This document shows, one piece after another, positions 3,180-57,472 of a stretch of 64,000 bases of DNA. This DNA is from Paragordius varius (taxonomy: Eukaryota > Animalia > Nematomorpha). Position 1 is the stretch's first letter; the number at the start of each line of letters is the position of its first letter. The stretch lies in NCBI GenBank assembly GCA_964247055.1, contig OZ176056.1:7874001-7938000 (forward strand), given 5' to 3'. Under the pieces are notes generated by a model. The model saw nothing but the letters and a program-made list of their open reading frames with translations. It was not told the origin of the DNA and searched no databases. The translations under genes were made by a program, and so were the position numbers.

Positions 3180-5373
3180 GGTTGGTTGGTTGGTTGGTTT
3201 TCCTAAGTCGTAAACGACTTTTTGGATATAGTTTTAACTATTTCTTTCCATTTTTTCCTATCTTTAACCGCTATATTGAGCTCTTTCAGTGTCATTTTGG
3301 TCTCTTCTTTTATCATATCCAACCACCTCATCGGTGGTCGGCCTCGTTTCCTTTGCCCTTCTACCTTCCCAAACATTGTATCTTTCTCCAGAGAATTCGA
3401 TCGCATGACATGACCAAAATATGTTAACTTTCTTTTTAGAATTATCTCCATGATGTTTGTTTTAGGTTTTATTTTTGTAGTTAGACTTTCATTCTTAATT
3501 TTATCCTTCCAGGTGTATCCTAGCATCCTACGCCAGCAGCTCCTTTCAAAAGCCATGAGCCTTTCTTTGTCCCTTTTTTTGAGGGTCCAACTCTCACATC
3601 CATATGTGGTGACCGGGAGAACGAAACAGTAGAGTAATCTTTTTTTGGTTTCAACTCCTACGCTTTTGTTTTTCCAAATCTTTATTAATTTGGTCATCGC
3701 TTCTCTACCCAATCCTATTCTCTTTCTGATGTCAGGAGTTGAAGACCCATCCTCTGAAATTATTGCGCCCAAAAACGTTAACTGTTTAACTATTTCTATT
3801 TCTACTCCTTCTATTATAATTGTAGGCTTTTTTCCTGTACATAATATTTTGGTTTTGTTAGGATTAAGCCTAAGACCATACCTCAAACTTTCCTTTCGAA
3901 CCTCTTCAATCAATTCCTTCAAATCATTTGCACTTTCAGCTATAAGAGTGGTATCGTCTGCAAACCTTAAATTATTGATTGTTCTCCCTCCTATTCTTAC
4001 TCCTATATTTTTACCATCCAACTTCCTCATTATCATTTCTGTGCACATATTGAACAGATAAGGGGATAAGCAACACCCTTGTCTGACTCCTTTCAAGATT
4101 GGTATTTCGTCTGTGTCCCCCGCTGGTGTTCTAATAATCGCTCTTTGTTTTACATACAGAGAGCTAATCAATCTTATTAAGTGAGACGATACCCCTACTA
4201 ATTTTAATGTTTCCCACAAGGAGTCATAGTTAATTGAATCGAATGCTTGTCTGTAATCAATAAAACACATGTATAATTCTTTCTGGAACTCTTTTGATGT
4301 TTCCATTATCCTTCTCATGTTTGAGATATGGTCTCTTGTGCTTTTTCCCTTCATAAATCCAGCTTGATTTTCTGGTATTTCTGTCTGTATGATACTGTGC
4401 ATTCTGTTTTGTATTACTTTTAGTAAGACCTTACTAGCGTGGCTAATAAGAGATATGTTCCGATAATTCTCGCATTGGAGTACATCTCCTTTTTTATATA
4501 TTGGGAGATATACAGATGATGCCCAATCGTTTGGCCACTCACATGTTTCCCACACCTTTTGACATAGCTGGTGTAACTTTTCAACGGGAATAGCTTTTAT
4601 GAACTCTATTGGGATATTGTCTAATCCCGTCGCTTTGTTGTTAGGAATTTGTTTTAAGGCTAATTCAACCTCCTCTCTTAATATATCTGGATAACGTTCT
4701 TCTTCTTTTAATTGCAACACCTTTGTTTGAGGAGCCTGATAGAGTTTTTGGGTGTATTCCTTCCATCTTTCTCGTACTTCTGTTTGTTTGCACAATATGG
4801 TGCCATTCTCTTTTTTAATCTTTTGTGATGATATAAAAGGTTTATGAGTCATTTGCTTCAGTTTCTGGAACATTGGTTGCATTAATCCTTTTTTGTTATT
4901 TAATTCCACTTCCAGACATTGTTTATTAAGAAAATCTTTGTAATCCTTCCTTTGTCGTTGAAATTCTTTGTTATATAATTTTACCATTTTATTATCACCT
5001 CTTGATTTAGCTTTTCTCCTCTTTTCTGCTATCTCTATACTCTTTTCTGATATCCATTTGTTATCTTTCCTCTTTACTCTCTGCACTTTTTCTTTTGCCA
5101 CTTCATTAACAACATTTTTTATCGTTCCCCATAATTGTTCTGAGCTACATCCATTGTCCAATCTTTCTAATCTATCTTTGGTTTCTGTTCTAAAACTATT
5201 TGGAATGTTCCGAGTGTCATATCTGTATATCTGTTTAACCTTATTTTTATTATTTTAAGTTTAATTTTGGTTATTAAAAGCTCATGATCGCTAGAGCAAT
5301 CGCTGCTTTTGCTTGTTTTGGTATCAATTATAGAGCTTTTCCATTTTTGAGGACACATTATGTAATCAATTTG
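3180..5373 (-). mobile_element. 5'-truncated RTE-clade LINE with 12-bp TSD and (AACC)n tail
   Basis: ATACCTAAAATT at 3168-3179 and 5374-5385 flanks the element; (GGTT)n on plus at 3180-3199; RT ORF plus APE C-terminal remnant (QIDYIM...SDHELL) at 5167-5373. Confidence 0.95.
3203..5161 (-). CDS. RTE reverse transcriptase ORF (652 aa, uninterrupted; endonuclease truncated)
   Basis: Motifs KATGLDNIP, YRNISLISHASKVLL, QAGFMKGKST, FIDYRQAFD, GVRQGCCLSPYLF, LRFADD, YGCESWTL, RGRPPMRWLD. Confidence 0.95.
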   Translation of the reverse strand: MDNGCSSEQLWGTIKNVVNEVAKEKVQRVKRKDNKWISEKSIEIAEKRRKAKSRGDNKMVKLYNKEFQRQRKDYKDFLNKQCLEVELNNKKGLMQPMFQKLKQMTHKPFISSQKIKKENGTILCKQTEVRERWKEYTQKLYQAPQTKVLQLKEEERYPDILREEVELALKQIPNNKATGLDNIPIEFIKAIPVEKLHQLCQKVWETCEWPNDWASSVYLPIYKKGDVLQCENYRNISLISHASKVLLKVIQNRMHSIIQTEIPENQAGFMKGKSTRDHISNMRRIMETSKEFQKELYMCFIDYRQAFDSINYDSLWETLKLVGVSSHLIRLISSLYVKQRAIIRTPAGDTDEIPILKGVRQGCCLSPYLFNMCTEMIMRKLDGKNIGVRIGGRTINNLRFADDTTLIAESANDLKELIEEVRKESLRYGLRLNPNKTKILCTGKKPTIIIEGVEIEIVKQLTFLGAIISEDGSSTPDIRKRIGLGREAMTKLIKIWKNKSVGVETKKRLLYCFVLPVTTYGCESWTLKKRDKERLMAFERSCWRRMLGYTWKDKIKNESLTTKIKPKTNIMEIILKRKLTYFGHVMRSNSLEKDTMFGKVEGQRKRGRPPMRWLDMIKEETKMTLKELNIAVKDRKKWKEIVKTISKKSFTT

Positions 5374-8129: not shown

Positions 8130-8200
8130 CTATTTTTTAATTAAAATTCCAATTATTAATTTTCGAGTGACATAGTTCACTCTTTGTCAAATAAACATTA
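8130..8200 (-). ncRNA. Candidate non-canonical type I hammerhead ribozyme (U3/A8 core); second copy at ~9965-10012 plus
   Basis: Minus strand: ttat-TTGACAA-A-GAGTGA actatg TCACTC-GAAA-AT-TA-ataa. Perfect 6-bp stem II; stem III register is short and atypical. Confidence 0.4.
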
Positions 8201-22483: not shown

Positions 22484-22575
22484 TTTTAATTTAATAAAAT
22501 AAATTTTATGATATAAAAAGAGTAATACACAATATTTGCAATTTTCCCAAAAAATAATGAGAGCATATGGAATCA

Positions 22576-25500
22576 AATGTATGTTCAGTAATTTTATTGC
22601 CAGTCAAAAAACATAAATGGTTTATCCAATGCGTAAAATACTGACCCACGAAATTATTTTGTAGTACACATATGAAAGAGGATTGACGTGAGAATTAACA
22701 AATGCTTTAATTTGATGGATATTTTGTAATGTTAAATTTTCAGAATATTATAGCAATTTATGTTAACATTTGTAATGTTGTTGTTACGTATTTAGATGCG
22801 GAATTTTGTGGGTTTTTATCTTTGATAAATTAATAAATAGTAAAATACGTATTTTAAGATTTTTTATGTTAATTATTCCTAAAAATAATAAATATTTTTC
22901 AACATGCTAAATACTTGTATTAATCAAATTGGTATTATAATTTTATATAGTTGTTATTACTAATTAAAAAAACACCGGTAATTATATATTTGTGAAAATT
23001 TGAGTAGATTTTAGATTTTTGTCTTTTATGTTTCGCATTGTTAATTATTAATAATTTTTAAGTATTTCAGACGTTTTAATCAGGCAAAAATTACGGTTTT
23101 TAACAAATTTAGTAATTTTTTTTTGTTTTTTAGGTTTTGCATTTTTAATTGTAATTAATTACTACATATTTTGGACATTATAATAAATACAAGTAAAAAT
23201 TGGGGTTTTTAGTAAATTTAGTGAAAATTTAGTTTTTTTTTCTTGTTTTTATATATTCAATTAATTACTAAATATTTTGGACATTATAATATATACAGGT
23301 AAAAATTGCGGTTTTTAACAAATTTAGTAAAAATTTAATTTTTTATTGTTTTTTTATTTAATATTGTTAATTGTAATTAATTACTACATATTTGGAAATT
23401 TTAATAAATACAGGTGAAAATGGCGGTTTTTAACAAATTTCAAATGTAACATTTTTTTTATCATTGTTATTTAATTAATAACTAAATATTTTGGACTCTA
23501 TAATAAATACAGGTAAAAATTGCGGTTTTTAGTAAATATAGTAAAAATTTAGTTTTTTTATTCAACCTTGCTAATTTATTTATCACTATATATTTGTGAA
23601 ACATTGATATATACAGGTAAAAATTACTATGATTTCCGGTTTTTTAAATTTTTTAAAATATTATTTTTCTTGTTTAACATTGATAACCAAAATATTAATA
23701 TAGTTAACATATCTGATACAGGTAAAAATGCATGTAACGGTTTTAGGTTTGACATTTTATTTTCCAAATCAACTATTTATATTTTACAAACACCTTATGT
23801 CACCAAAGATTGAAAATAAGATCAAGATATATAAAACATCTTTTAAAGTATCTGAATATCGCCAAATATAAATAAATTTATTTTAATTATAATACAAAAT
23901 ATTCATAATATTATGTTTGAAATTAACATTCTTCTATATTGCGGTGTGCGTCATGATGTTCATATTGAAGAATAGTATGAGATGCAATAATTAAATGCAA
24001 AAAATCCTGAAAATTTCAATCACCATCATTTTCTAGGTAGATTCTATCAACTAAAATATAAGATAATTAATATATTAGAAAATTGATACCTGGATTCTAG
24101 TATTTTCAACATATGGGGGCTAAAACATTTAAAGTTTGAAAGAGTACTAAATAAGGTTGACTTGGCTTTTTAACAACTAAATTTGCAAAAAAATATTTTC
24201 TTCATGAAAAAATTCAAAAATGATACTTTATGTTTTTGCGTTTTCGTTCTACCATCTTAAACTATAAATATAAAAAACATTCTTCACCAAAGCAAACAAT
24301 GTTAGTGTTGCTTTGGAATGCTGTTGCATTCAAAGATTAAAATAAATATTTGTTTCTATTTTCTATTTGACGTCATTGGTATGGTGAAATCATATAAGCC
24401 TTTTCATATTTATAGTTTAGGATGGTAAAACGAAAAAAACATAAAATATCATTTTTTGAATGGAAAATATTTTTTTGCAATTAGTTGTTACCAAGTCAAC
24501 CTTATTTAGTTCTCTTTCAAACTTTGAATGTTTTAGCCCCCAATTAATGTTGAAAATATTTCTAAAATTCAGGTATCAATTTTCTAATATATTAATTATC
24601 TTATATTTTAGTTGATAGAATCTACCTAGAAAATGATGGTGATTGAAATTTTCATTATTTGCATTTAATTATTGCATCTCATACTATTCTTCAATCTATA
24701 TGATCATCATGAACGCACACCGCATCGTATATCAATTATATAAACAAATTACCTGTATTAATATCAATAAGAAGAATGTTAATTTCAACATAATATTATA
24801 AATATTTTGTATATTATACATTTATAATTCAAATAAATTTATTTATATTTGGCGATATTCAGATACTTTAAAAGATTTTATATATCTTGATCTTATTTTC
24901 GATCTTTGGTGACATAAGGTGTTTGTTAAAATCTAAATAGTTGATTTGGATAATAAAATGTCAAACCTAAAACCGTTACATGCATTTTTACCTGTATCAC
25001 ATATGTTAACTATATTAATATTTTAGTTATCAATGTGAAACAAAAAAATAATATTTTAAAAAATTTAAAAAACCGCAAATCATAGTAATTTTTACCATAT
25101 CAATGTTTCACAAATACATAGTGATATATAAATTAACAAGGTTGAATAAAAAATTTAAAATTCTACCAATTTATTAAAAACCGCAATTGACAGCAGTTTT
25201 ATAAATGTCCAAAATATTTAGTAATTAATTAAACAACAATGATACAAAATACAAACAATGTTACATTTGAAATTTGTTAAAAACCGCCATTTTCTCCTGT
25301 ATTTAATAAAATTTTCAAATATGGTAATTAATTACAATTAACAATATTATATATAAAAAACAGAAAAACTAAATTTTTACTAAATTTGTTAAAAACCGTA
25401 ATTTTTACCTGTATTTATTATATTGTCAAAAATATGTAGTAATTAATTACAATTAAAAATGCAAAACTCAAAAAACAAAAAAAACTAAATTTTTACTAAA

Positions 25501-26354
25501 TTTACTAAAAACCGCAATTTTTACCTGTATTTATTATAATGTCCAAAATATGTAGTAATTATTACAATTAACAATGCAAGACCTAAAAAACAAAAATAAC
25601 TAATTTTTTTCTAAATTTAATAAAAACCGCAATTTTTATCTGTTATTATAATGTCCAAAATATGTAGTAATTAATTACAATTAAAAATGCAAAATCTAAA
25701 AACAAAAATTTTTTACTAAATTTTTAAAATCTCAATTTTTACCTATATTTATTATAATGTCCAAAATATGTAGTAATTAATTACAATTGAAAATGCAAAA
25801 CCTAAAAAACAAAAAAAAATTACTAAATTTGTTAAAAACCGCAATTTATACCTGATTAAAATGTCTGAAATACTTAAAAAATTTTAATAATTAACAATGC
25901 TAAACATAAAAGACAAAAATCTAAAATCTACTCAAATTTTCAAAAATATATATTTACCTGTGTTTTTTTAATTAGTAATAAGAACTATATAAATTATAAT
26001 ACCAAAATTAAATAATACAGGTTAGCATGTTATATATATTATTAAATTTAGGAATAATTAACATAAAAAATTTGAAAATACGTATTTTACTATTTATTAA
26101 TTTATCAAAGATAAAAACCCACAAAATTCCGCATCTAAATACGTAACAACAATATTACAAATGTTAACATAAATTGCTATAATATTCTGAAAATTTAACA
26201 TTACAAAATATCCATCAAATTAAAGCCTTTGTTAATTCTCACGTCAATCCTCTTTCATATGTGTAATACAAAATAATTTCGTGGGTCAATATTTTACGCA
26301 TTGGATAAACCATTTATGTTTTTTGACTGGCAATAAAATTATTGAACATACATT
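22576..26354. mobile_element. Foldback-type palindromic element, ~3.8 kb
   Basis: 22576-~24276 is the reverse complement of ~24400-26354 around a ~125-bp spacer; arms hold ~110-bp tandem units (about 6 left, about 8 right); no ORF; no TSD found. Confidence 0.85.
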
Positions 26355-26479
26355 AAATGCATACTGTAATGCGGTAAAATCATGCAATCTAATGTTTTAA
26401 CACCATAATCTTTTGGTAAAGTTTATCACAATTTGGCCGAAATATGATTTTAGCCTTGTAAGCGCATAACACTAGGTGC

Positions 26480-27600
26480 AAAAAAGTGGGTTTTTTTAAC
26501 AAATTTTTTTTTCATAGATAGCTTATAACCAGCGAATTCATTTGCCGTTTTTATTTGTTAATGATGTAGTTATAAAAATATTAGAGAAAATGGAAATTGG
26601 GCGAAAAGTGAAAAATAAGGATTAAGATAATTTAAAAAACAATGATAAAGCTTGAGATATTATGGTTTATTATCTTTTAGCAGATATTACAATTTATAAA
26701 TAGCCCAAAATCATATAATTGGAGTTTTTATAAAAATCCAGATCGAAAAATCGCGTTTTTTTAACATACTCAAAATACAAAAATATTTTTATGAAACTAT
26801 AAAATAATCTTTTCAATTATTTACTAGCTAAACTCACTAAAATCTTAACATTCATATTTTTTCAGTAAAAAAACTTTATCAAAATGGAACTTTAAATTTT
26901 ATTTTTTTGTCATCTGTTTATGAGTGTATAAACAATTTACTGCTTTATTTTGAAATACAAGAGCGGAAATTATAAATTATATAAATTAATACAAAATATG
27001 ATTTACAAGTAGTGGAATATCAACCAAAAGGCCGTAATAAACCCAATAATATTGATTTGTGTTAAAACAAACCTGTTTTGGGATTATACGGAATGTTGAT
27101 TGATATTCCACAACTTTTGAATCCTATTTGCCCAAATTATATACTTACCCGCTCATGTAAGATTCCAAATTTGACAGTAAATATTTTCACTCATAAACCA
27201 AATGACAAAAAAATGAAAAAAAAATTTTAATATTGTTTGGATATATATTACTAAACATAATATAATTAATATTTTAATAGTGAGTTTAGCGGGTAGATAA
27301 ACTAAAAAAATTATTTTGATATCTTAATAAATTATTCTTTTAAGTATGATAAAAAAAACCTTTGATCTGAGTTTTATCTATATGATTTTAGGCTTTTTAT
27401 ATATTGTAAATGTCTGCAAAAAAATAATATAACTTAATTTCTTTATCATTTTTCGAGCTTAATTATCCTTAATTTTCACTTTTGGCCAAATTTTAATTTT
27501 CTATCAATATTTAACAAGGTCGTCAACTAATAATTTTTGCGCAAATTAATTCCTGGTCGTAAGCTATCAAAAAAAATTATTTTGTTAAAAATTATTCACA
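26480..27600. mobile_element. ~1.1-kb element with long imperfect inverted arms (family Y), copy 1
   Basis: gctaaactcacta (~26828) vs tagtgagtttagc (~27278); gatagcttataaccag vs ctggtcgtaagctatc; direct homologue at 36275-37425. Confidence 0.7.
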
Positions 27601-29959: not shown

Positions 29960-32900
29960 AAACTTTCGGACTTAATAAAACCAACATTTATTATCAACGT
30001 TCCAATTATGTACCCGTATCATCACAATAATCCATGTAATGATGTTTAAAATGAGTAATAATTAAATTTAATTTTAGTTGAATTAAGAATGAAAAAACAA
30101 TTTATACTGTTTTATTCGTAATGCATTGGTCTAACATATAATTTATATTGATTATTAATTATTTCAACACGATCTCCAGCCGATAGATGCAAATTTCTGC
30201 AAGAATAGGCTCCACATTGGAATGTCGATTGGTAATTTAATCTGGCATTATACACTGTCATTCTCGTGCTATATTGATGTGGTAATAGGTAGGATTTAAT
30301 CTGATCCCATGTGCTTACACTATTGTTCCATTCAATATCTAAAATAGTAAATATATTATTTTAATATAGGGATAAAATAGTCATCTTAAATGTTGTGTTA
30401 ATTAAGCACCATAGATGGTAAAATTGTTAAGTCATTATAATAACATACAAGCTTTTTTTACAAAATATTTTTATCTTAATTTCATAATGAATGCTAAATG
30501 CATTCTCAGCTGTGACCATCAAAAAAATTTATGGAGGAGTCTAAAATGCGATTTGCGTTTTGAATATATATAAGATGTTCATGAATATTGGATTAAAAAT
30601 TAACTATTATCATTATTTTATATATTGTTTTCTAATTTTGCGAATAAACCATTAATTAACAATAGAAAAAAGATACTTTTAATACATAAACTATTTTAAT
30701 TATATTTTTGTGTAAATAAATACCACCGATTTTGTGTACAATCTAATTACTTTGTTAAAGATATATTAAAAAAAGGGATATTATCTTATCTTTTACTGAT
30801 CAATTTTATAGCTAATATTATCTTAAACCTCTGGGCATTATATGAAACCTTAAAAAATACTTTTAGAATTGGTTTTGCACTCTTGTGGTTCCAATTCGAT
30901 CTTGTGGATAGAATTTGCCTTTTTGAGATAAAGCATGCTATGTTTGGATATTTCTGATTTTGGGCCAGTTATTACCATTTTATTTTTGTCCATGTAAGCA
31001 TCTAATTTGGTCAAATATTCCAATGAAGACCCCAAAAACTCAGTCTCTCCAACAGGCCAGCCAAGTGTTAAAAAACTTACGATTTCTTCGCAAGTATAAT
31101 AACGCCTCACACTTTTGGCTATAAAAAATAGGTGTAATAATTGTTTTTTATGATAGATAATTATATATTATAATTTGCTATATCATTACAATTGTTTCAA
31201 AAAAAGATGTTTTATGTACGACTAGATGGAAGATTTTTGGTGCAACGAATGCCATATATTTTTTTGATAAATGGCGTCTTTATTTATAATAAATTATAAT
31301 TAAAAATATTTTATTGTTTCATAAAATATTAATATTTACTTTTTAGCTCAGATGTTAACTGTTTTAGCGCGGAAAAATTATGAAGAATGTTGGATAAAAT
31401 ACAAAACGCTTTTTTATACTTTCCTGAGCGACTCAAAGGCCCTAAAACAAAAACCTATTATAAAGACCTATAATTTTGTTTTTAATGTAAAGCTTTACTT
31501 ATAAAATATATCAAGTTTATTTAAATTGGATTCGTTTGTTATTGCACACGTGTCCAAAAGATAAAATAAAATAATTATTTAAAGCTCTTTAAAGAATTTC
31601 TTGGCAAAAACAGTTAATACCGCAATATTGAAAATTTGCCTCACACCAAATGTTATTTGTAATTACAAAAATTATTTATAAAACTTACATGTAACAATCT
31701 TATTCATTGCAGAACTAATTCCATCTGTGTCCCATATTTCTATAAATGTATTAATATGGATATAATCAATAATTTAATTAAATACAAAAATGATATACCG
31801 ATTGGCTTAATAAATGTGGTCAAGTAATGTATATTATTAACGTAGAGGTGCAAATTGGTTTCTCTGGTCACAGTTCTATTGATTTTAATTGAATATTTGG
31901 ATCTTTGTAAAATTGAACCATCATCACCCTTTAAAAGAAATTGACAATTTTTGGCCAAATTTCGGTCTTCAAACAAAGTGGAACAATCTTGTTGAAAAAT
32001 GTATTGCCCTCTGTACGCCACATAAGTAGTTGACCAATTGCTTACGTCGATGAACACTTTGAGTTTTTTGCCATTTATTGTTATGTTTAAGTATCCAGCA
32101 TTATCGTAAACCCCGACTAGGGTAAATATTAATATTGTTTTATTTGTCACTTTGAATGGAACTGGTTTTCCATTATTCGCAATTAGTTGAATGTTTAGAT
32201 GAGTTTTATCTTTATTATCCATTTGCCAATAATCTTTCAAATCGAGTTCCCGCTCTGAGACACGATTAGTTTGTATCCATCTTGTGTGAGCATGTTCTAG
32301 TTTAATAAAATTAATAATTTGTCTAGGAAAGTTTAATTTAGTTTGAGAATACAAATTAATTTTAGGTAATACAAAGCTAATGAATGACTTAATATTGACA
32401 TATCATATATTATTAAAATAAAGCAACATATTTATGTTTGATTAGCAACGCCTACAAATTCACAAAATAATTGACAAATATACTTACCATCTATAGAGAT
32501 ATTTCCATGCCTTGTTATCACACCATTTCGAGTAACGGAATAAGGGCCATCAACCAGGTTTAATTTTGGTGTAATTCCTTGATTAAGGAATTGGGTATAA
32601 TTGACATTTTTGTAAGAAAATGTTTTATAAGCAAATTTGACAGTTATGTTAGCTTTTCCTTTGTACTCATCCACTAGTTGATTGTAAAATTGTTTGCGAA
32701 ACCTAACCGTAAGATCTTTGGGAGGTGGTAATTTTTGGGCTATTATACTTTGGCACCCAAATAGAAGTAAAATAATTGGGATATACATTACTTGGAAAAC
32801 TAAAAAATTATATATGATTAATATTAAAAAATCTTGGTTTATATAGACTGTATTAGAAAAAAATATTTACATCATTTTTGTCACCTATGATATTTTTGCC

Positions 32901-35900
32901 GGGTGATAAAATAAATATTATTGAAATTCGGTCCGCTATAAACCATTATAAATGAAATTATTGATAACATATAGTTTGAAGCTTAGTTTTTTTACTCAAT
33001 AACAATTTGTAAAATCATTGTAGGTTAGACAAATAACAAAAATGGCAATAATATACCCAATGCATTTTTCCAAATGTCAATATTTACATATTATCATAAC
33101 ACCTTCCTCGTCATACTTTTATTACCAAATCAAAGCGCATAACTGAAAAAATAGCATTAATTTTATTTATAAAAATATTAACATTTCATATTAAGAGTAC
33201 GATGTTTCAAGGTTGAGTAAAATAAATGTGTTTTTATCAAAAATTTACCATATGCAAATATACCCTTTCATCAAAATTGACTTAGTATGTTGAGCATCAT
33301 AGTAAATAAAAAACGTGCTTAAATTGTTTTTATGCCCTCCCTCCATGCTTCAAAATATAGTAATGTTTAAAATTTCATATTATAATATATTTCATAATCT
33401 GACATATGTTAAAACATCTTATCCCGCAATCACGGCATTTCTGCATTTATTTTATAAAAAAACGGCCCGTTTTAAAGAGGGCCTAAAATATCTTTCGGAA
33501 CGTACAGCTAAAACTTAAAATTTGAGATAAATAAATTTATGCTTATATTTAATAAATTTGGTATTAACCATCTAGCATTTGCTAAAATTTTTTTATTTGA
33601 TATAATGTGCGCTAATTTAGTCACTTTTCGTTATCCAGAAGCTCTAAGGCCCAAAACCAAAAGCATAATGATAATTATCATACATATTTCCATCTATCAG
33701 AATAAATAATCCATTAAGATATTGTTCATCCCCATTTTCAACACTGTGTATATTAAAATAATAATATATTATATACAGTCTGAAATTTTGATATATTAAA
33801 ATCGATTTGGACAACTTGCTAATCCTAAAATATTTTACCCATATATTTTTTATTTTTATCAGTTTACCAATTATTTTTTGGAGACGATTTATTTTTTTAA
33901 GGAACATAAGTTAACATTGTAAATAACTGTATTAAAAGGTTTTGGTTATAATTTACTTAATTCTCATGCAATAGATAAGCTAATATATTATTGTAAATAC
34001 TGAAATTTACGATGGGATAACTCAAAATCCAATTTAAACGAACAGTTGATTATAAAGTTGATAAAGACTGCCACCAAAAAGTAAGATAGCTTTTTAAAGT
34101 TTATCAATTTATAACCATAATAATTATTTTATTTTCCTGTTAAATTACCGATTCAAAAAATCCAAGGAAAAGTATGGTGGCAAAAAAATCAAATAGATGA
34201 AGATTTATTTGATTGTGTTGATAGTTAAATTTGGAAACACTTATTTCATTTAGAAGAACTGATTAACACTCCATCACCTTTTAGGGTAATTTTATAACCC
34301 AGACCGATTTGCACTTTAAACATCGTGAAAAGTATTCTATACGAATTCAAAGATATGCTTTCTTGAGTCTTTTCGCGAATTTACAAAAAAAAATTATTGT
34401 AAATATTCCTCATCTCAAACTTTTTGCCGCCATTTTTTATAAATGATTTTTAAATCGCTAATGCAACAAGGAATAGTGTATATTATGTTTAGAAAAATGT
34501 AAATAATTAACTTTAAAAAGCTTCCACTTGATATATTTGATTTTAATGTCAACTGTTCGTATCAATCTAGAGCTGTCACAATTTTAGACACTAGGTCAGG
34601 ATCTGCAAAAAGAAGATTTTTTTAAATACATGAGTATAATGTTTTATAATTAAAGTTTAACTAAAATTTTCATAACTTTAGTTTATTTACAATATTGGGC
34701 TCTGAGATATAAAACTACCCCAAATGTTTAAATAAAGAAAAGATAATGAAGTCTTAAATTATAATGCGAAATTTGCTGTCATAACCATAGTAATATGGAC
34801 TTAATAATATTAGTTTTTAATAATTTTTTGCCAGTTAAGCCATTTATCAAAAAAAATTCGCCAAAGGTTTTTATTTTGAATTATTGTATTTGTAGGTCCC
34901 TAAAAAGCCATGCATATTTTTAAATTTGAATCAATGTCATAGAAACTTTTAAGTCGATGGTTATTGTCGGATATAATAAACTACCATTAATATTTTAGTT
35001 AGCCTAATACCTATTTAATATTATATTTTCATCTTTTATTTTATACAATATATTATAAAAAATGTTAACTGTATAAATTATGTAAATATTGATTCAATAA
35101 AATTACATACTAAATACAAATTAAAGATATAAACAGTATAGAGGCTTTAAATCGGGCAAACCCATAAATTTTTATACTTAGTTCGACTAGGTTTTTGGCT
35201 TAGGGCCAACTGTAATAACAAAAATTATGTTTTTAAATTTGAACTATCACGTACGCAAATACATATTTACGAGCTGGACGCACTTACTTACCCCATTTTT
35301 ATTTAATATATGTATATATTAAAGGTTTTTATGTGCTAATCATCTATATAAGACACTGTTTTAAAATGTTAGAAACAGTATTATAATTGCACAAACTAAT
35401 TTTTTCAATAATCAAAATTAAATACGTTTTTAGCGTTGTCATACCCGTAACTAACACCTGTGTATCATTTATTTCCAAGATAAATTTATATAGGCTTTCG
35501 ATAAGTTTGAGTACGGCAACTATCCAATCAGCATATAAAACGTTTTTCCGAAAAAAATACTTTTTCTCAATGTTTAAAACTCTAATCTATGACATAATGA
35601 TGGAAAGACATTATAAGCCGCAATATATATCGATTTATAGATTTATCGAGTAATTAATTGCTATTCACCGTATAAGATAACATGACATATAATTTAAAAT
35701 TTTAAAATATTTTAATATAGCTTAAAACAAACATTTCGGCTTTGGATACCCTGATGATCCCAAATTTTACATATATAGCGGCATTCATTTATTCAAAAAA
35801 GTTGATGATCATAAATTTAAAGCTTGGGGAACAGTTTAAAACGGAAGGCAAACCTTGCTTGTATTAAAAAAACTCTCATGTGCATTTTCGGTTGTGTCTG

Positions 35901-36090
35901 TTTATTTTGGCCTACCGAAAATCGGGCATTTTTCAAAATAGTGTGGAAGGGTTTCACCAATTTTTTTGAAATAAGGTTAACGGTTGTTGTTACTCTATTC
36001 AAATGTAGCTGCCGATAGGCGTTATTAACAATGTAGAATTTTATTTACGGATATGGATTTGCAAATATTTATCCTAAACATTTCAAGATA
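29960..36090. repeat. Left arm of ~6-kb inverted segmental duplication
   Basis: Colinear reverse-complement similarity to ~51490-57470 through exons, introns and 3.3 kb of upstream DNA. Confidence 0.9.
30112..32788 (-). CDS. Unknown secreted glycoprotein, copy L; six exons (32788-32488, 32296-31799, 31739-31689, 31656-31621, 31118-30861, 30338-30112), 456 aa
   Basis: Signal-peptide-like MYIPIILLLFGCQSIIAQ; exon lengths 301/498/51/36/258/227 give one open frame to TAA; all introns phase 1 and GT-AG except the intron 3 acceptor (CAA); junctions match copy R. Confidence 0.8.
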
Positions 36091-36175
36091 ACACAGACGT
36101 TACAAAAAAAGACAAAGCGCAATCATTTTTTTGAATTTAAATAAGGATTTTTTTATATATGCGATGGTTAATATA

Positions 36176-37809: not shown

Positions 37810-38200
37810 TGATAATTGAAAATAAATAGAAAATTAATAGAAAGATAATTATTAACAGAAATTATAAACGTTATGTGAAACCCTTTTGTCAATAGTAATC
37901 GCAGACTAGTTTCGTGCTTGTTAGCACTCATCAGTACGAGCTATTTGACTTGGGGTTTTCACACAACTTTGCATTTTGGTAAAAATGCAGTTGGTTATAC
38001 CAATTTAAATTAAATTTAATTGACATTCATGAAAATTAAACTGAAAATATGAAAATAAATTAAAAATTGATTGAAAAATTCATCGCAATAATGAAAAACT
38101 TGTCAGGAACCGTTAAATTTATGAAGGAAAAAAATTGTTCCGGGTTCCACTTGGTTCTTATCTCGGTTTCAAATTTTATGAGCCTTGATTGTATATTAAA
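37810..38200 (-). mobile_element. 3' end of a second Penelope-like element
   Basis: Minus strand reads LE..Y.IKAHK.(L)NRDKNQ, a decayed GIY-YIG C-terminal LNRD motif, followed ~200 nt later by a hammerhead ribozyme. Confidence 0.55.
37875..37962 (-). ncRNA. Type I hammerhead ribozyme, canonical core
   Basis: gtgaaaacccc-aa-gtcaa-atag-c-tcgta-CTGATGA-GTGCT-aaca-AGCAC-GAAA-CTAG-TC|tgcga-tta-ctat-tgac-aaaa-gggtttcac; predicted GUC cleavage between 37904 and 37903. Confidence 0.92.
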
Positions 38201-38781: not shown

Positions 38782-41493
38782 CAGGGGTGGCCACACTTTT
38801 TTTGTCGCGAGCTTTTTTTTGGCTTTTTTGTTAAAAAAAGAGTTCGCGGTCACCCAGAAATATTTATCAAAAAAACTCAATCAACACTTTAAATGATGTA
38901 TATACCTGCTTTACAGATTAGAGTGACTTGTTTAAACCATTTTATTGTAATTTTTTTCTATCAACCAAATACAAAAATAATTTTAATTAAAAGACAACGG
39001 GTTATTAACTACCTTAATTTTTTAACCAACATAAAACACTTCAAAATATTTATTTATTAAATTTCTATTATATGAAATTTTACAATATAAAAATTTAAAC
39101 AATGCATTTGAAATTACAGGGGAGAATACATTATGATACAAAAAATAAAAGAAATAAAAAATAGCATTCCAATTTAGAACCATAATTTGAACATAAATAA
39201 GAGTACATTAAAATTGTATCAGTTTTAATTCTATCCACATATTTTTTAGTAAATCGGCTTTTTCCTAAGCGAAAATACAACTCGATAAACATCCATATTT
39301 AATAAAGAAAAAAATATTTAAACGCCCGACTGCGAAAAAATTCAGAAAGTTTATCTAAATTAGGTTCAAATGAAGTCAAAGCAATCAAACATGATTCTAA
39401 ATGTTTATTAGTTAATTGTGACCTCTGTTTAGTTTTAATAGCATTCATAATTGAAAAAGCCGATTCACATAAATATGTGGATCCAAAAAAAGAATTGAAT
39501 AATGCAGCGGTTTTCCAAATATGGTGGTATTTATCTTTATTTATAAATTTATATATATCTGATCCTAATGATTTTAGATGGATATCGCATTTAACATTTA
39601 TTAATTCTTCTTCCAACTCTGCTAAATTTGGTACACCAAGAAAGTGGGTGAGTTTTTGAGCAATATATTCAACATTATTATTATTATTATTAAATGGGCA
39701 TGATAAAAAAATAGCGATGTCTTCAAGTTTATTTACAGATGAAAATCGTTTTTCAAAATCATTAATAAGCAGACCAATATCATCTGCATATTTTTCAAAA
39801 GAGAGATTCTCTATTTTTTCAGACACCGCTGCCAGATTAAAAAAATGTTTTAAATCTCGGTTTTTTAATTGTGTTTCTACTACTGTTAGTGTTTCATTAG
39901 GAGATATTAAAGCACCCATCATATCCATTATTGTTTTATCTTTTCCTTGTAATTGGATGTTTAATTTATGCAATTTTTCCGTGATATCGCATAAAAATGC
40001 AAGATCAAGCAGCCAATCCTGATCTTTCAATTCAGGGTATGAAAATTTAGAATTCTCTAAAAAAATTTCTATTTATGGTAAAAGTTGCCTAAATCTAATT
40101 AAAAATGCGGCACGACTCAACCACCTTACATCAGTATGTAATAAAAGTTCTCCATATTCCACGCCGCACTCATTTAACAAAATTCGAAATTGGCGGCGGG
40201 ACAAGCTTTTTGTTCGAATGGCGTTAACAATTTTAAAACAGGGGTTCATTACATAATGGTATTTAAAAACTTTTGAACATAAAACTTGATTATGGATTAT
40301 ACAATGGTAATCAATGAACTTGGGAAATGCACTGTGATTTTTACATAAAGCGATAAAGCCGTTGTTAACGCCAATCATAGCTGGAGCTCCATCAGTAGTT
40401 ATAGATGCGAGTTTTACGATGGGAAGTTTCGATCTGTGATAAATTTATAAAAAGAATCAAAAATATCCTGCCCTCTGGTTCGTTCGTGGAGAGGTATTAT
40501 AGTTAAAATTTCTTCTTTGCAGATAAATCACTAAATATCATACGAATAAAAATGCATAATTGGGCGATTCCAACATAATCGGTGGACTCATCGAGTTGCA
40601 AGGAAAAAAAATACAGTTATTAATATTTTCATGTAAAATTTCATCAAGATTATTACTAATATCTTCAGCCCTGCGCATAACGGTATTTCTCGATAAGCTT
40701 ATGCTTTTAATAGCTGTCATAATATTATTTTTGTTATCAAAATTTTCAAATAAAATATCACAAGCGCTAATAAAGGCTTCTTTAAATATTTCACCATCTT
40801 GGAATGGCTTATTGTTCCGAATGAGTATTTCCGCTACCTTGAATGAAGCAATCGTAGCATTTTTATAGTCTTTGTTGTATTTAAGTATGCTATTTTGTGA
40901 GGCGGATAATTGTTCTTTTAATTCCTTTACTTTAATGTTGCGTCCTTGAGTTTGTAAGGGGTAGTTTTTGGAGTAATGTGGATGCAGAGAGCTATAATGT
41001 CTTTCAATATTTGACTTTTTGGGCAAAGCAACAGTACTATTGCATATTAGACAGGTGCATGTTTCATTTATCATAATAAAAAAGTATTCATGCCCCCAAT
41101 CTTTCTTGTATCTGTACAACTTTTTTTGGCTCATTCTAAAATATAAGTTTTACAAACCTACTTTTGGTGTATCAAATCAAATCTAACTTCACGATTATGC
41201 TTCTGATTTATGAATAAGCTTTGCTCAAAGTTTTGATATATTCAAGGGTAATGACTGATTTTAAGTTTTAATGCAAATGCTCCAAAACATATGAATTATA
41301 ATTAATAAAATAATTTTTTTACACCCTTTTCTTAGACGTTTTTTTTTAATTTAAACCGTATTTTTTTGTATTTTAAATTTAAATTCGCTCAGAAGTAGCC
41401 AACTATCCGAAAAAAATCAATAAAATTTTTAAAAAAAATATTTTCAGGCGGTCACTTTTTGAGTTGTCGCGGTCACCTCGTTGGCCACCCCTG
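38782..41493 (-). mobile_element. Full-length hAT (SPIN/Charlie, GTF2IRD2-like) transposon, 2712 bp
   Basis: TIRs CAGGGGTGGCCA / TGGCCACCCCTG; perfect 8-bp TSD CTATACAC (38774-38781, 41494-41501). Confidence 0.95.
39299..41134 (-). pseudogene. hAT transposase broken by frameshifts
   Basis: TCLICNSTV...ERHY, ITTDGAPAMIG, HCIIHNQVLC, HTDVRWLS, WLLDLAFLCDIT, FGSTYLCESAFS across three or more frames. Confidence 0.9.
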
Positions 41494-45888: not shown

Positions 45889-45900
45889 TCTCCCACCTTT
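45889..45900 (-). promoter_or_regulatory. Polypurine tract AAAGGTGGGAGA
   Basis: 2 nt before the TG start of the 3' LTR (45886). Confidence 0.85.
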
Positions 45901-48900
45901 AATAAGAAAGACGATCCGGAGCTTTTCGTTCCCGGCGAGGATAACGGCTTTGTACTTCTGTCAAGTTACACTCCGACTCCACAGCTTCCGTAACTGGGAT
46001 CTCTGGTACAATGTCAAGGGCGGGTTGTGACATAACAGACTTCTGTAGCTGATCGGCGTGTTTTCGAATTTTGCTACCGCCATCAGTCTTGTAAGATAAT
46101 AATCCTGTTCTTTCAATTACTTTTCCTTTCCGCCACCCCTCTGCTGTTTCATTTTTAATCAGAATAGCATCATCAACGTCGAATTCTCGTAAGGGGGCTC
46201 TAGTATTATCCGTAAAATTTGATGGTATTGTCTTTAACCATGACAAGGGACCTAACAATTCTCTTTTTAGGAATAATGAGCACGGTGTTGCTCTCGTTGC
46301 ACTATGAATTGCTTGCCGATAGCTCCACAAAATGGTATTCATTGCTTCTTGCGGAGAGATGTCAGCCCTCTTCGTAGCTTTATATTTAGTTTTCAATGTG
46401 TAAATAGATTTCTACCAACCCATTCGTTCGTGGGTGATACGGACTCGACATAACATGTTTGATGTTTAAGTGTTTAAGCCTTTCATCAAAATCGTGCGAT
46501 ACAAAATACGATGCATTATCACTTACTATTATTTTAGGAAAACCATATCTCGCAAACAATTGTTCTAAGCAATTTAAAACAGACCTGCTCGTAACTTGTT
46601 TCAATAAATTAACTTCCAGCCATCTGGACGAGCTGTCAATTGTTACCAGCCAGTTGAAATTATCAATGGGACCAGAAATATCTATGTGTATTCTTTCCCA
46701 GACGGCGGTGTTGAAATTCCATTTGTATGTTGGGTTTTCCTGGACATTAGGCTTGTATCTTTGACATGAGTCACATGTCTTCGCAAGCAATTCAATACTT
46801 TGGTCCAAGTCTGGCCAATATACACTGTGGCGCGCAAGGGACTTCATGGTACTTATCCCTGGGTGTCCAGTGTGAAAGTAGTTTAGGACTTTATTTTGCA
46901 TGGATCTAGGAACAATGAGTCTATCCTCCAAATAAACTAAACCATACGATGCTTGGATAGCGTTGCGATGTGATTGATAATTTTTTAGATCTGGATCATC
47001 CCAATTGTTGGAATTTAATGCAATTTTTAATTTTTTTATCACCGGGTCCTTATTGGACTGAACTAATACATTTTTTTTTATTAATGTTCAAATCGTTCAT
47101 AGATAAGAACCGAATTTTTTCAGCTACAACATGATCATCATTCATTTCAGGATCGTCAATTGCTAATCTTGATAGGGGATCAGCTAAATTTTGAACCCCT
47201 TTATTGAAATGAATGGTATAATCATACCCCGATATTTTATAAATCCAACGTAATAATTTTATATTAGTGACTCCGGTTAAGTTCCGGTCTTCCCCAAATA
47301 ATTTAATCAGTGGTTTATGATAGTCAATATTTTAAAAGATCTCCCATATATGAAAGGGTGAAATTTGTTTACCGCGAACAAAATCACCTTGGCCTCTCTT
47401 TCGATCGTCGAATAATGTTTTTCAGAATTTAAACATTTCCTGGATGCGAAAGAGATTGGCCGCTTGCCATCTTCGGTTACATGGAAAAGGATGGCACCCA
47501 AACCTTCGTTTGAAGCATCGGTCTCAATCAATAATGGCAATCGCGGATTGTACGGAATCAGTTCCACAAAATTTGCTATTAGTTGTTTTGACAGTGCAAA
47601 TTGTTTATCATGAATATTCTCCCATTTCCATGGCATTTTGTTTCCAGTTAAAGTGTGCAGATCACTTATGAGTGAATGTAATCTTGGAATAATGAAAGTT
47701 TAATAATCCTAAAAAGGACCGTAATGTTGTTTTGTCCTTTGGAACAGGACATTTCAAAATAGCCTTGATTTTTTCATCCGTTGGCTTAATACCTCTTTTA
47801 GATATTTCGTATCCCATGTAGGATACTTTTTCCTGGAAGAATTTCATTTTATCTGGTTGCAAACGGAATCCGGCCTGTTCAAGTTTCTCCAACACATGTT
47901 CAAGATTTGCTTTGTGTTGAGTGTCTGTATTGCCGGTTACCAGAACATCATCCAGATAAGCACAAACGCCTGTGCAATCATCCAGAATTTGATCCATAAC
48001 TCGTTGAAATATCATTGGAGCATTTGTGAGCCCGAAAGGTAATCGTTTATACGTAAAGTAACCTCTGTGTGTTGTAATTGTCAGAATATTAGAGCATTCT
48101 TTATCAACCGGTAGTTTTAAGTAGGCATCCTTGAGATCCAAAACTGAAAATGAATGTCCATTTCCGATTTTACCCAATAATTGATCAAATGTCGGAATGA
48201 TATGAGAATCTTTTGATAGATAAGGATTGATTGTGACACGAAAATCGGCGCAGATACGAGCCTCCTCATTAGATTTTAACACGTTGACCGTTGAGGTTGC
48301 CCAAGATATCTCAGTTGTTGTTGGGTCTATTGGTTCTATAATCCCTAAATCTAACAATCTATTCAATTCATTTTCTACCAATGGTTGCAATGGTAGAGGA
48401 ACTCTACGGCATGGAAAAGCTTTTGGTTTTGCATCCGGTGTCAAAAAATTTTTGATCGGATTGCCGTTGTAACAACCAAGTTCCTTTGAGAATAGTTTTG
48501 GAAATATTTTGGTCAGCTCCATCTTCTCATTAGAATTTATATTATTGATTTCACCTTTTGGAAAAGGTAGCTTGTACGCTTTTATCCAAGGTAATCCAAA
48601 AATTGGATCAAAATTGCTTTTAGTTACGATACATAACGTTTTCTTTTCATTGTACAACGTCACAGTGATCATAGTTTTCCCTAAGATTGTTATCTTATTA
48701 TTATCATACGTGGTTATTTGATCGGACCACGTTAACTTAGGGCTACCGATCTGCTTCCATATTTGTTGACTTATGAGACAGCAGTCAGCACCGGTATCGA
48801 AAATCATATCTATCATATTATTGTTGATCTTCACTTTTATTTTAGGGGTAGTGCCCGCTTTTATAGATCTAATTTGATCTAAATTTCTCACCAACTTTGT

Positions 48901-49784
48901 TTTGCACATTGAACTAAAGTGGTTATTTTTGTTGCAATTGTAGCACGTTTTGCCCCAAGCCGGACACTTGTTTCTCACATGCAGTGATCCACAATTTCTG
49001 CAATTTACTTTAGAATCATTATTATCCCGGACATCATTATTCTTATTGTTTTTATAATTATTATTGTTATAATGGCCCTTGTTAAAACTTCCATGAGGTT
49101 TTACATTTCTGGATCTATCCACTTTAAGCTTATTGATTTGCGAGGGAAGATTATCGGCTTCCTCAAAACTTAAAGCCATATCGACCAACATTTGTAGTGT
49201 CAGTGGTTTGTCATCTAACTTACCGAGCGGATATTTTATGTGGAGTTCTCTTTCTAATCTGGGTTGATTTAATCCAATCAAAAATATATCCCTGATTTTG
49301 TTAGAAATGTCCGAATCAAATCCAGAATTGTCGGCCAAAATTTTCAAACGTTCTAAATACAAAGAATAGATTCATTCTCACCACGACGAATACGATAAAA
49401 TGCACATCTATTCACCCATAGACTTTTGTCTGGGGCATAGATTTGAACTGCAATTTTATAGATTTCCGGCCATTCCAAATCTTCGATGGTATCAGGATAT
49501 AGAATATTTTCAATTTTGTTCAAAATTTTAATACCACCGAAAGCTAAAAATAATTTTTTTATATTGAAATCCGTGACAGGAATATCCCTGGCCGCGAGTA
49601 CCCTTTCTATGTGCTTGACATAATTTTTGAAATTGTAACATTCGTCAAATGGTTCAAGAATTATTCGATTTAGAGGATTTTGTGCATTACTAAATGATGT
49701 ATCTCCGGGATTTTCCATTAGGCAGAATAAATTTTTTTCTCGTCGCCAAATAATATCAGTTGGGTATAATTTATTATAACACAA
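45899..49784 (-). pseudogene. gag-pol polyprotein, frameshifted into five or more pieces
   Basis: Cys/His knuckle region CRNCGSLH...CPAWGKTCYNCNKNNHFSSMC, FDTGAD, YLDD, ETDASNEGLGA, H-GHPG...C..C, SDNASYF, NGLVE. Confidence 0.92.
49739..49748 (-). promoter_or_regulatory. Primer-binding site TGGCGACGAG (tRNA-Ser type)
   Basis: Lies 2 nt inside the 5' LTR end; complementary to the CUCGUCGCCA 3' end typical of eukaryotic tRNA-Ser(GCU). Confidence 0.8.
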
Positions 49785-54125: not shown

Positions 54126-54999
54126 TAGAAAATGTGGGGAACAAACATTATCTAAATGAATTATATATACTCTGATAGATAGAAAAATGTATCAAAATTA
54201 TCATTGTGTGTTGATTTTGGGCTTTAGGATTCAAGTTAATACTACTTTTGTGGGTAGCTGCTAACAAAAAGTGACTAAGCGCACATTATTAAATAAAAAA
54301 TTTTTTAGCAAATGCTAGATGGTTCATACCAAATTTAATTTTTTCTCAGAATAATTTATATCAAATTTAAAGTTTTGGCCGTAGTTTCAGAAAGATTTAG
54401 GCCCTCTCTTAAACGGGTTGTTTTTTAAAAATAAATGCAAAAATGCCGTGGCGGAATAAGTTATAACATATGCCAGATTATGAAATAAAATATAATTGAA
54501 AATTTGATTCCTTCATTTTGAAGCATGTAGGAAGGGTATAAAAACAATTTAAGCACGTTTTTTATTCACTATGATGCTCAACATTCCAAGTTTGATGAAA
54601 GGGTATGTTTTATGGTAAATTTTTGCAAAACATTCTACTCTTAATATAATATTTTTAATGAAATGTTAATATTTTTATCAATAAATTAATGCTATTTTTT
54701 CAGTTATGCACTTTGATTTGGTAATAAAAGTATGACGAGGACAGTGTTATAATAATATGTAAATAACATGTTTTGGAAATATGCATTGGGTACATTTATT
54801 ATTGATATTTCTGTTATTTGTCTAACCTAAAATGATTTTACGAATTGTTAAAGTAGAAAATAACTAAATGCCCCAAACTATATGTTATCAATAATATTTA
54901 TTTAATATTTTATAATGGTTTGTAAATATTTTTTTTAAATACAGTCTATATAAACCAAGATTTTTTTTATATAATATATATTTTTTAGTTTTCCAAGTT

Positions 55000-57320
55000 A
55001 TGTTTTTACCAATTATTTTACTTCTATTTGGATGCCAAAGTGTATTAGCCCAAAAACTTCCAGCTCCCAAAGATCTTACGGTTAGGTTTCACAAACAATT
55101 TTACAATCAACTAGTGGATGAGTACAAAGGAAACGCTAACATAACTGTCAATTTTGCTTATAAAACTTTTTCTTACAAAAACGTCAATTATACCCAATTC
55201 ATTGATCAAGGAATAACACCTAAACTTAACCTGGTTGATGGCCCTTATTCCGTTTCTCGAAATGGCATCATAATAAGGCATGGAAATATCTCTATAGATG
55301 GTAATTTTATTAGAAAATTGTTCTGTGAATTAGTAAGCGTTAATGTTGATCAAACACAAATATCTCGCTTTTGAAATGGCTGTAAATTTTACATCTTGCT
55401 CTTGATTTTAATACACATAAATGGTAATATAAAATATATAAATATGTCAATATTAAGGCCTTCATTAGCTTTATATCACCTAATATTAATTTGTATATGT
55501 TAAGCGTATTTACACTTTACTATACAAATTGTTAATTTTATTTAACTAGAACATGCTCACACAAGGTGGATACAAATAAATCATGTTTCAGAGCGGGAAA
55601 TCGATTTGGATGATTATTGGCAAATGGATAATGAAAAACAGACTCCTCTCAACATTCAACTAATTGCGAATAATGGAAAACCAGTTCCATTCAAAGTGAC
55701 AAACAAAACAATATTAATATTTACCCTAGTCGGGGTTTACGATAATGCTGGATACTTAAACATAACAATAAATGGCAAAAAACTCAAAGTGTTCATCGAC
55801 GTAAGTAATTGGTTAACTTCTTATGTGGCTTACCGAGGGCAATATTATTTTCACCAAGATTGTGCAACTTTGTTTGAAGACAAAAATTTGGCCAAAAATT
55901 GTCAATTTCTTTTGAAGGGTGATGATGGTTCAATTTTACAAAGATCCAACTATTCAATTCAAATCAATAAAACTGTGACCAGAGAAACCAAATTGCACCT
56001 CTACGTGAATGATTTACATTATTTGACAACAATTATAAAACCAATCGGTAAATCCTTTTTGTATTTAATTTAAATTCTTGATTATATCCAAATTAATATA
56101 TTTATAGAAATACGGGACACAGATGAAATTAGTTCTGCAATGGATAAGATTGTGACATGTAAGTTTAAATAATTATTATTATTATAGATAACATATGGTG
56201 TGAGGCAAATTTTCAATATTGCGGTATTAACTGTTTGATCAGAAATTGTTTAAAGGGCTTTGAATAATATTTTTATTTTATACTTTGGACACGTGTACAA
56301 TAATAAACGAATCCAATTGACTATCAAGTTGGTGTATTTTATAAGCAATACATTAAATAATAAACAAAATGGCGAATCTATATAATGGGTTTTTTTGTTT
56401 TGGAGCTTTTTAGTCGCTTAGGAAAGTATTAAAAAGCGTTTTTTTCAGCATTCTTCATATTTTTCCGCGCTATAGCATTTAACATCTGAGCTAGAATGTA
56501 AATTTCAATATTTTTAAATTATAATTAAAACCGCCATTTATCAAAATATGGCATTTGTTGCACCAAAAATCTCCATCTGGTCATATAAAAATTGAACACT
56601 TTTTTTAGAAACAATTATATTGATTTAGCAAATTATAATATATATCTATCCATCATAAAAAAAAATACTGCACATATTTTTATAGCCAAAAGTGTGAGGC
56701 GTTATTATACTTGTGAAGAAATCGTAAGTTTCTCAACACTAGACTGGGATGTTGGGGAAACTGAGTTTTTGGGGTCTTCATTAGAATATTTAACCAAATT
56801 AGATGCTTACATGGTCAAAAATGAAATGGTAATAACTGGTCCTAAATCAGAAATATCCAAACACAGCATGCTTTATCTCAAAAAGGCAAATTTTATCCAC
56901 AAGATCAATTGGAACCACAAGAATGCAACACTAATTCTAAAAGTAATTTTCTTAAGACGTATAAGGCCCAGAGGTTTATGATAATATTACCTAAAAACTG
57001 TAAAAATTATAAGATTATATCGCTTTTTCCAATATATCTTAAATACAACTCTTAAGGTGAATATTTTATTTCCATGTTATAATATATTTACTATTAGATA
57101 TTGAATGGAACAATAGTGTAAGCACATGGGATCAAATTAAATCCTACTATTACCATATCAATATAGCACGAGAATGACAGTGTATAATGCCAAATTGAAT
57201 TACCAATCGACATTTCAATGTGGAGCCGATTCTTGCAGAAATTTGTATCTGTCAACTGGAGATCGTGTCGAAATCATTAATAATCAATATATATTATATG
57301 TTAGACCAATGAATTACTAA
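55000..57320 (+). pseudogene. Unknown secreted glycoprotein, copy R (exons 55000-55300, 55550-56047, 56108-56158, 56188-56223, 56686-56942, 57098-57320); two 1-nt deletions
   Basis: All splice sites GT-AG; 87/100 aa identical to copy L in exon 1; aagatc-aattgg (~56907) and tcctac-tatta (~57148) each lack one base relative to copy L. Confidence 0.75.
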
Positions 57321-57472
57321 AACTTTATCAATTATGTTTTCATTATTAATTGAACTTAAATTAAATTTAGTTATTATCCAATCAAAAACAATATTATATG
57401 GATTAATGTGATGATTTAAATCAGTAGGTTATAATAAATGTTTATTTTATTGATGTTGATTCCAAAAGTTAA

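Follow-up and report, generated by a model that had tools for sequence, protein, structure and literature searches.

The minus-strand locus at positions 30112-32788 of the window, by which we mean the whole 64,000-nucleotide stretch of Paragordius varius DNA analysed here, belongs to an orphan gene family with about 30 loci and, on balance, probably encodes a secreted, glycosylated binding or matrix protein with two Ig-like domains. As judged from its sequence, it is an intact and genuine protein-coding gene that was missed by ORF calling. The family is well defined by a conserved five-exon structure in which all introns are phase 1, and genes of this kind are largely missed by ORF-based annotation of the genome. 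The gene model presented below has been tested and can be used directly by annotators.

Gene model

The original prediction was a protein of 456 amino acids, encoded by six exons with uniformly phase-1 introns. This model could be rebuilt exactly from the minus strand at 30112-32788 and comprises 456 codons. Its exons are:

32788-32488 (-): exon 1, 301 nt; ATG-started open frame up to a phase-1 GTAAGT donor
32296-31799 (-): exon 2, 498 nt; acceptor ...AACTAG conserved in 3/3 close copies
31739-31689 (-): exon 3, 51 nt; phase-1/phase-1 micro-exon with W-D..G motif, AG acceptor and GTAAGT donor both canonical
31656-31621 (-): putative exon 4, 36 nt, two Cys; doubtful, acceptor AA
31118-30861 (-): exon 5, 258 nt; canonical phase-1 AG and GT sites
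30338-30112 (-): exon 6, 227 nt including the TAA stop at 30112-30114; canonical acceptor

All junctions are phase 1, with the junction codons GAA, GAA, TAT, GCC and AAT, and every in-frame exon piece translates without stops. Introns 1, 2 and 5 as well as the donor of exon 4 and the acceptor of exon 5 follow the GT...AG rule. The surrounding window is eukaryotic DNA of very high AT content, with 21-40% GC per 2-kb step. Exons 1, 2, 3, 5 and 6 are supported, and five of the six exons are thereby secure.

Micro-exons and introns of about 30 nt had been claimed for this gene as well. This holds for exon 3 with its 51 nt, while exon 4 (36 nt) and the ~30-nt intron preceding it are insecure, given the AA acceptor. 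The acceptor before exon 4 reads AA in the window gene (copy 1) and in an intact copy 3, and AG only in a frameshifted copy 2 (both copies are described below); the intron itself would measure 32 nt in copy 1 and 29 nt in copy 2. The sole downstream AG of copy 1 was ruled out as an alternative acceptor, since its use breaks the frame. Because all introns are phase 1, exon 3 can be spliced to exon 5 in frame, across a canonical intron of 570 nt and with the junction codon TCC, which would give a product of 444 instead of 456 amino acids. In more distant paralogues, exon 3 can likewise be joined straight to exon 5 in frame. A genome-wide search found the exon 4 element nowhere beyond three copies on chromosome 7, and it was also not found when looked for in a 64%-identical paralogue on contig 3. 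A 46-nt block at 31656-31611 shows a single difference between copies 1 and 2 (97% identity, with introns at 79-84%); apart from the five secure exons, no other block is so well conserved. Scanning the window for Rfam families and tRNAs gave no explanation for it. Exon 4 is possible but unproven, and we regard its existence as doubtful. The claim of a ~30-nt intron stands or falls with it. Consequently, the available sequences leave both this intron and one of the two claimed micro-exons unsecured.

Copies on chromosome 7 and their surroundings

Two further copies of the gene were located on chromosome 7, one of them inside the window:

54746-57451 (+), gene at about 55000-57330: second copy, inverted, 82% DNA identity to copy 1
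contig 7, 7869.8-7872.3 kb: third copy (locus L044), just upstream of the window, intact, 89% DNA identity

Copy 2 has suffered 1-bp deletions near 56907 (exon 5) and near 57147 (exon 6). Because these deletions do not compensate each other and leave the frame unrestored, copy 2 is probably a recent pseudogene. Its dN/dS relative to copy 1 still amounts to 0.15-0.47. Between both copies, the exons are 92-94% identical and almost free of indels, while the introns are 79-84% identical and contain many indels.

The duplicated unit exceeds the gene and spans about 6 kb (29974-36100 vs 57451-51497 and 1-1803). Upstream of the gene, about 3.3 kb (33.7-36.1 kb) likewise recurs in the three chromosome-7 copies, at 70-81% identity. 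A segment of 357 bp within intron 5 of copy 1 (30399-30755) is absent from copy 2 and reflects either an insertion or a deletion; the ungapped-length match to L044 suggests that copy 3 possesses this segment too.

Other elements observed in the window are:

3203-5161 (-): retroelement remains, 652-aa ORF with a reverse-transcriptase domain
22500-27600: dense direct and inverted repeats, 70-88% identity
36174-37524: 1.35 kb matching its own reverse complement at 70%, also matching 26.5-27.6 kb
39299-40030 (-): 243-aa ORF adjoining the Spin-doc ORF (next line), no Pfam match
40538-41134 (-): 198-aa ORF with a C2H2 zinc finger of the Spin-doc type (E 8e-9)
45899-49784 (-): LTR-retrotransposon pol region (zinc knuckle, protease, RT, integrase), split over several ORFs

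An Rfam scan of the whole window at gathering thresholds returned no family, including at 37875-37962 and 8130-8200, where hammerhead ribozymes had been proposed.

A gene family under purifying selection

The three copies belong to a much larger set. Searching the 110.6-Mb assembly with exon 2 gave 35 matches, and a profile of exon 5 gave 33, most of them with open frames. About 30 loci carry exons 1, 2, 5 and 6 in the same order and on the same strand, with identities down to 25-38% in the remotest members; for exon 1, identity ranges from 35 to 89% across 29 paralogous loci. The largest array resides on contig 2 at 9.37-9.53 Mb, where at least 12 copies, some on either strand, follow each other at intervals of about 5-25 kb. 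It contains several near-identical pairs, and a few of its copies have stops or a truncated exon 2. Smaller groups are found on contig 2 at 5.3, 8.8, 12.4-12.9 and 14.4-15.1 Mb, and further small groups on contigs 3, 5, 7, 8, 10 and 11.

The splice sites are conserved along with the exons. Phase-1 GT or AG sites occur at homologous positions in nearly every locus for the donor of exon 1, both sites of exon 2, both sites of exon 5 and the acceptor of exon 6. In every locus inspected, this last acceptor is canonical and its position is unchanged. Exon 3 has homologues of 48-63 nt in other subfamilies, which share the W-D..G motif, the AG acceptor, the GTAAGT donor and phase 1. Such a recurrence of the exon set in about 30 loci, with open frames and conserved splice sites, is far beyond chance and bears out the notion of a genuine gene that escaped the ORF track.

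Estimates of dN/dS (Nei-Gojobori) are mostly 0.1-0.5 in each of the four large exons, among close and distant pairs. Conservation within the family is highest in exon 5, with values of 0.1-0.4 in most pairs. For a few close pairs, exon 1 or exon 2 reaches 0.75-0.99, and no pair is clearly above 1. Of 300 pairs, 79% differ most strongly in exon 2, whose mean amino acid distance is 0.49 as compared to 0.36-0.41 for the other exons. Thus the shared exon order, the conserved splice sites, the dN/dS values and the conserved sequons and cysteines (see below) indicate a real gene family under purifying selection.

The locus might still be read as decaying repeat DNA or as the passenger of a transposable element, its frames being chance products or relics. 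Retrotransposon remains do lie around it, and a frameshift affects one of the three local copies. However, many pairs have dN/dS values far below 1 in four exons, introns diverge with indels while exons do not, splice sites keep their homologous positions even where loci share no more than 25-40% identity, and no likeness to transposon proteins emerged from Pfam. We therefore consider it extremely unlikely that no functional gene is present.

Protein features and modules

The gene product had been described as a secreted glycoprotein without a transmembrane helix, and its features agree with this description. A hydrophobic N-terminal stretch resembles a signal peptide by eye and hydropathy and ends with a small residue followed by Gln at an LAQ motif, which is conserved in most paralogues. 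Apart from this leader, the window protein contains no second hydrophobic stretch or membrane span. Both predicted counts, eight N-x-S/T sequons and eight cysteines after the leader, were confirmed on the window protein. Four sequons are found family-wide; N47 is present in 11/12 and N63 in 9/12 members, and both are located in exon 1. All six cysteines of exons 2, 5 and 6 are conserved throughout the family. The protein is thus most likely exported and N-glycosylated.

Each of the larger exons seems to correspond to a unit of its own. Exon 1 encodes the leader, followed by some 80 aa that make up an N-terminal module. Exon 2 comprises an invariant Cys pair at exon residues 104 and 117, i.e., 13 residues apart, and exon 3 probably forms a linker. 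The 85-aa module of exon 5 has invariant cysteines at exon positions 9 and 80. Since they are situated at both of its ends, they suggest a self-contained, disulfide-closed module. Exon 6 provides a C-terminal module of 74 aa with a conserved Cys-x4-Cys.

Predicted folds

Structure predictions and searches were run exon by exon on single exons. For exon 2, AlphaFold2 with 15 paralogues as alignment predicted two Ig-like beta-sandwiches at residues ~10-84 and 85-165 (pLDDT 82, pTM 0.72). The best PDB matches obtained with Foldseek are two-domain Ig-like tandems, namely filamin C domains 14-15 (E 5.5e-5) and D1D2 of Tyro3. When the domains were treated separately with VIA-align, the first (10-84) matched filamin repeats (Z 5.6-6.5), and the second matched Ig-like domains of semaphorin, Tyro3, Izumo1 and LAG3 (Z 6-7, rmsd 2.3-3.3 over 72-78 residues). 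Overall, VIA Z-scores per domain range from 5.6 to 7.4. With Z under 8, these matches of a predicted model are of moderate strength and indicate a common fold and not kinship. A comparison with a viral structure library returned generic Ig-like proteins only.

Exon 6 was predicted with higher confidence (pLDDT 89) as a helix (residues 9-16) and four strands. Foldseek found no match for it at E under 0.3. The VIA list comprises one UvrA domain at Z 6.3, while the remaining entries stay under 5 and are mostly small beta-grasp-like and sandwich domains. Neither list contains a C1q/TNF chain. The assumption that exon borders are module borders is supported by these models, as confident folds were obtained for exons 2 and 6 when each was modelled on its own.

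Search for relatives

No protein family had been recognised for this gene, and the searches performed here lead to the same result. Pfam, searched with the window exons and 12-15 members per exon, gave only scattered sub-threshold hits and no family common to most members; there was also no similarity to transposon proteins among these exons and paralogues. PDB sequence-profile searches with the four exon alignments revealed nothing meaningful. A word-based protein search with exon 2 and with the alignment of exon 1, covering proteins of 0.55-1.75 times the query length, found no match. A HMMER profile of exon 2 was compared with 1.84 billion representative proteins and obtained three matches. 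One of them is a translated satellite-like tandem repeat and was rejected as a relative. The other two are bacterial type-IX-secretion multi-Ig proteins, which were rejected as well, since the likeness is limited to one short strand motif, tvtvNGK (hhalign probability 4%). In the ESM Atlas, the best values were 0.89 for exon 5 and 0.85 for exon 1, both for unnamed bacterial clusters that provide no lead, and two metagenome scans with patterns of exon 1 and exon 5 retrieved no relative. Internal duplication of a module was not detected by hhalign comparison of exons 1 and 2, 5 and 2, or 5 and 1. A clear match to a known or TE-derived protein, named in the original prediction as the result that would speak against it, was sought by these exon-wise searches and not found. 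The family appears to be a lineage-restricted orphan that is detected only in this AT-rich animal genome.

Possible function

If the modules are put in order, the protein would begin with a cleavable signal peptide, followed by the N-glycan module of ~80 aa, the two Ig-like domains, the linker, the 85-aa two-Cys module and finally the alpha/beta C-terminal module. With a length of ~444-456 aa, it would enter the secretory pathway, become glycosylated and, since it has no anchor, be released. Outside the cell, it presumably acts by binding something. The faster-evolving Ig-like pair could then provide copy-specific binding, while the better conserved end modules could fulfill a shared function such as assembly or the contact to a common partner. 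The divergence of exon 2 fits such a variable binding part between conserved parts. However, as no pair has a dN/dS clearly above 1, diversification of specificity is only suggested by the relative rates. The effector or adhesive role originally put forward is a guess; recognition, matrix and interaction with another organism are all candidate roles.

One might envision a structural component of the extracellular space, such as cuticle, eggshell, sheath or matrix, that is made in bulk, so that copy number would reflect dosage and not diversity. This scenario would agree with the tandem clustering of near-identical copies, as seen on contig 2 at 9.37-9.53 Mb, with purifying selection throughout and with a beta-rich, predictedly glycosylated protein without anchor. 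On the other hand, structural matrix proteins are typically repetitive or of low complexity, which this protein is not, and the subfamilies differ by up to 60-75%, which is beyond the need of dosage copies. A bulk structural role is thus rather unlikely.

Alternatively, the protein might be exported against another organism or against microbes, as a factor at a parasite-host or immune interface that expanded in an arms race. An orphan, expanded and presumably secreted family that evolves fastest in its Ig-like part is what such a history might leave behind, and the few close pairs with dN/dS of 0.75-0.99 in exon 1 or exon 2 point in the same direction. However, dN/dS clearly above 1 was seen in no pair, and we judge this scenario to be distinctly unlikely.

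A bolder idea is that of a lineage-specific recognition repertoire, formed by about 30 secreted receptors or opsonin-like proteins whose specificity derives from the fast-diverging Ig-like pair. In the three chromosome-7 copies, exon 4 would be an additional cassette that is included or skipped, by means of either a ~30-nt intron ending in AG or an unusual AA acceptor. If true, splice-level variation would exist on top of gene-level variation, yet we consider this improbable.

Taken together, we favor the reading as a secreted, glycosylated binding or matrix protein with two Ig-like domains. From a biological point of view, it adds another lineage-restricted family of presumably secreted proteins whose Ig-like fold is generic, and is of modest interest. 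This interest would rise if expression tied the family to a host, gamete, cuticle or immunity interface, or if an ultra-short intron turned out to precede exon 4 as a regulated cassette.

Comparison with known systems

Two faint resemblances had been pointed out in the original prediction, one to DSL domains and one to a strand of C1q/TNF proteins. Together they would allow a reading of the protein as a mosaic of shuffled known modules, DSL-like and C1q/TNF-like jelly-roll, with recognition of the Notch-ligand or C1q type. The short motifs and the fact that all introns are phase 1 speak for such a mosaic. The DSL domain (Delta/Serrate/Lag-2, PF01414) has about 45 aa and six conserved cysteines. 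In contrast, the DSL-like stretch, formed by exon 4 and the start of exon 5, contains only three cysteines and has no DSL match in Pfam. Furthermore, it rests on exon 4, which only three members of the family possess and which lacks an AG acceptor in the two intact ones.

The globular domain of C1q (PF00386) and TNF is a ten-strand jelly-roll of ~130-140 aa. The window protein shares with it a short strand motif of the L-x-L-S-A-G-D-x-V type near the C-terminus and nothing more. This motif lies in exon 6, whose module of 74 aa, instead of ~135, is confidently predicted as a helix and four strands; folded alone, exon 6 does not give a ten-strand jelly-roll, and no C1q/TNF protein emerged from the fold searches. 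Exons 5 and 6, taken from the window gene and from 14-15 paralogues, matched no C1q/TNF profile (Pfam up to E = 1, PDB profiles up to E = 10), and C1q, TNF and DSL are all absent from the Pfam and PDB profile matches of the window protein with 12-15 paralogues per exon. Profile, fold and exon 4 evidence thus largely refutes a mosaic of DSL and C1q/TNF modules, which we regard as very improbable, and the attractive resemblances proved not to be real.

Tandem Ig-like proteins, such as filamin repeats or Ig1-Ig2 of Tyro3/Axl, are closer in fold, as exon 2 is predicted to form two consecutive beta-sandwiches of the seven-strand type. However, exon 2 and its relatives (15 members) match neither Ig, I-set, V-set nor Filamin in Pfam. 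The canonical Ig core consists of Cys(B)...Trp(C)...Cys(F) with a disulfide between B and F, whereas the sole Cys pair of exon 2 is spaced by 13 residues. In addition, the three other modules of the window protein have no counterpart in these proteins. With respect to the immunoglobulin superfamily, the exon 2 model shows the beta-sandwich fold, but neither the profile nor the Cys/Trp core is present; with respect to the filamin/ABP280 repeat (PF00630), the profile is absent too and the resemblance is one of fold only. According to its model, exon 2 is best described as having an Ig-like fold, with membership in the superfamily not established.

With schistosome MEGs, the family has in common a putative signal peptide, the orphan status, clustered paralogues, exons that are all phase 1 on both sides (1-1) and a conserved micro-exon of 48-63 nt. 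The coding sequence of MEG-type genes mostly consists of many symmetric exons of ~36 nt or less. In the window gene, only exon 3 and the doubtful exon 4 are small, so that one, perhaps two, of six exons are micro-exons, and apart from the putative exon 4 there is no suggestion of cassette-type variation. Instead, about 90% of its coding sequence resides in four ordinary exons of 227-498 nt that encode folded domains.
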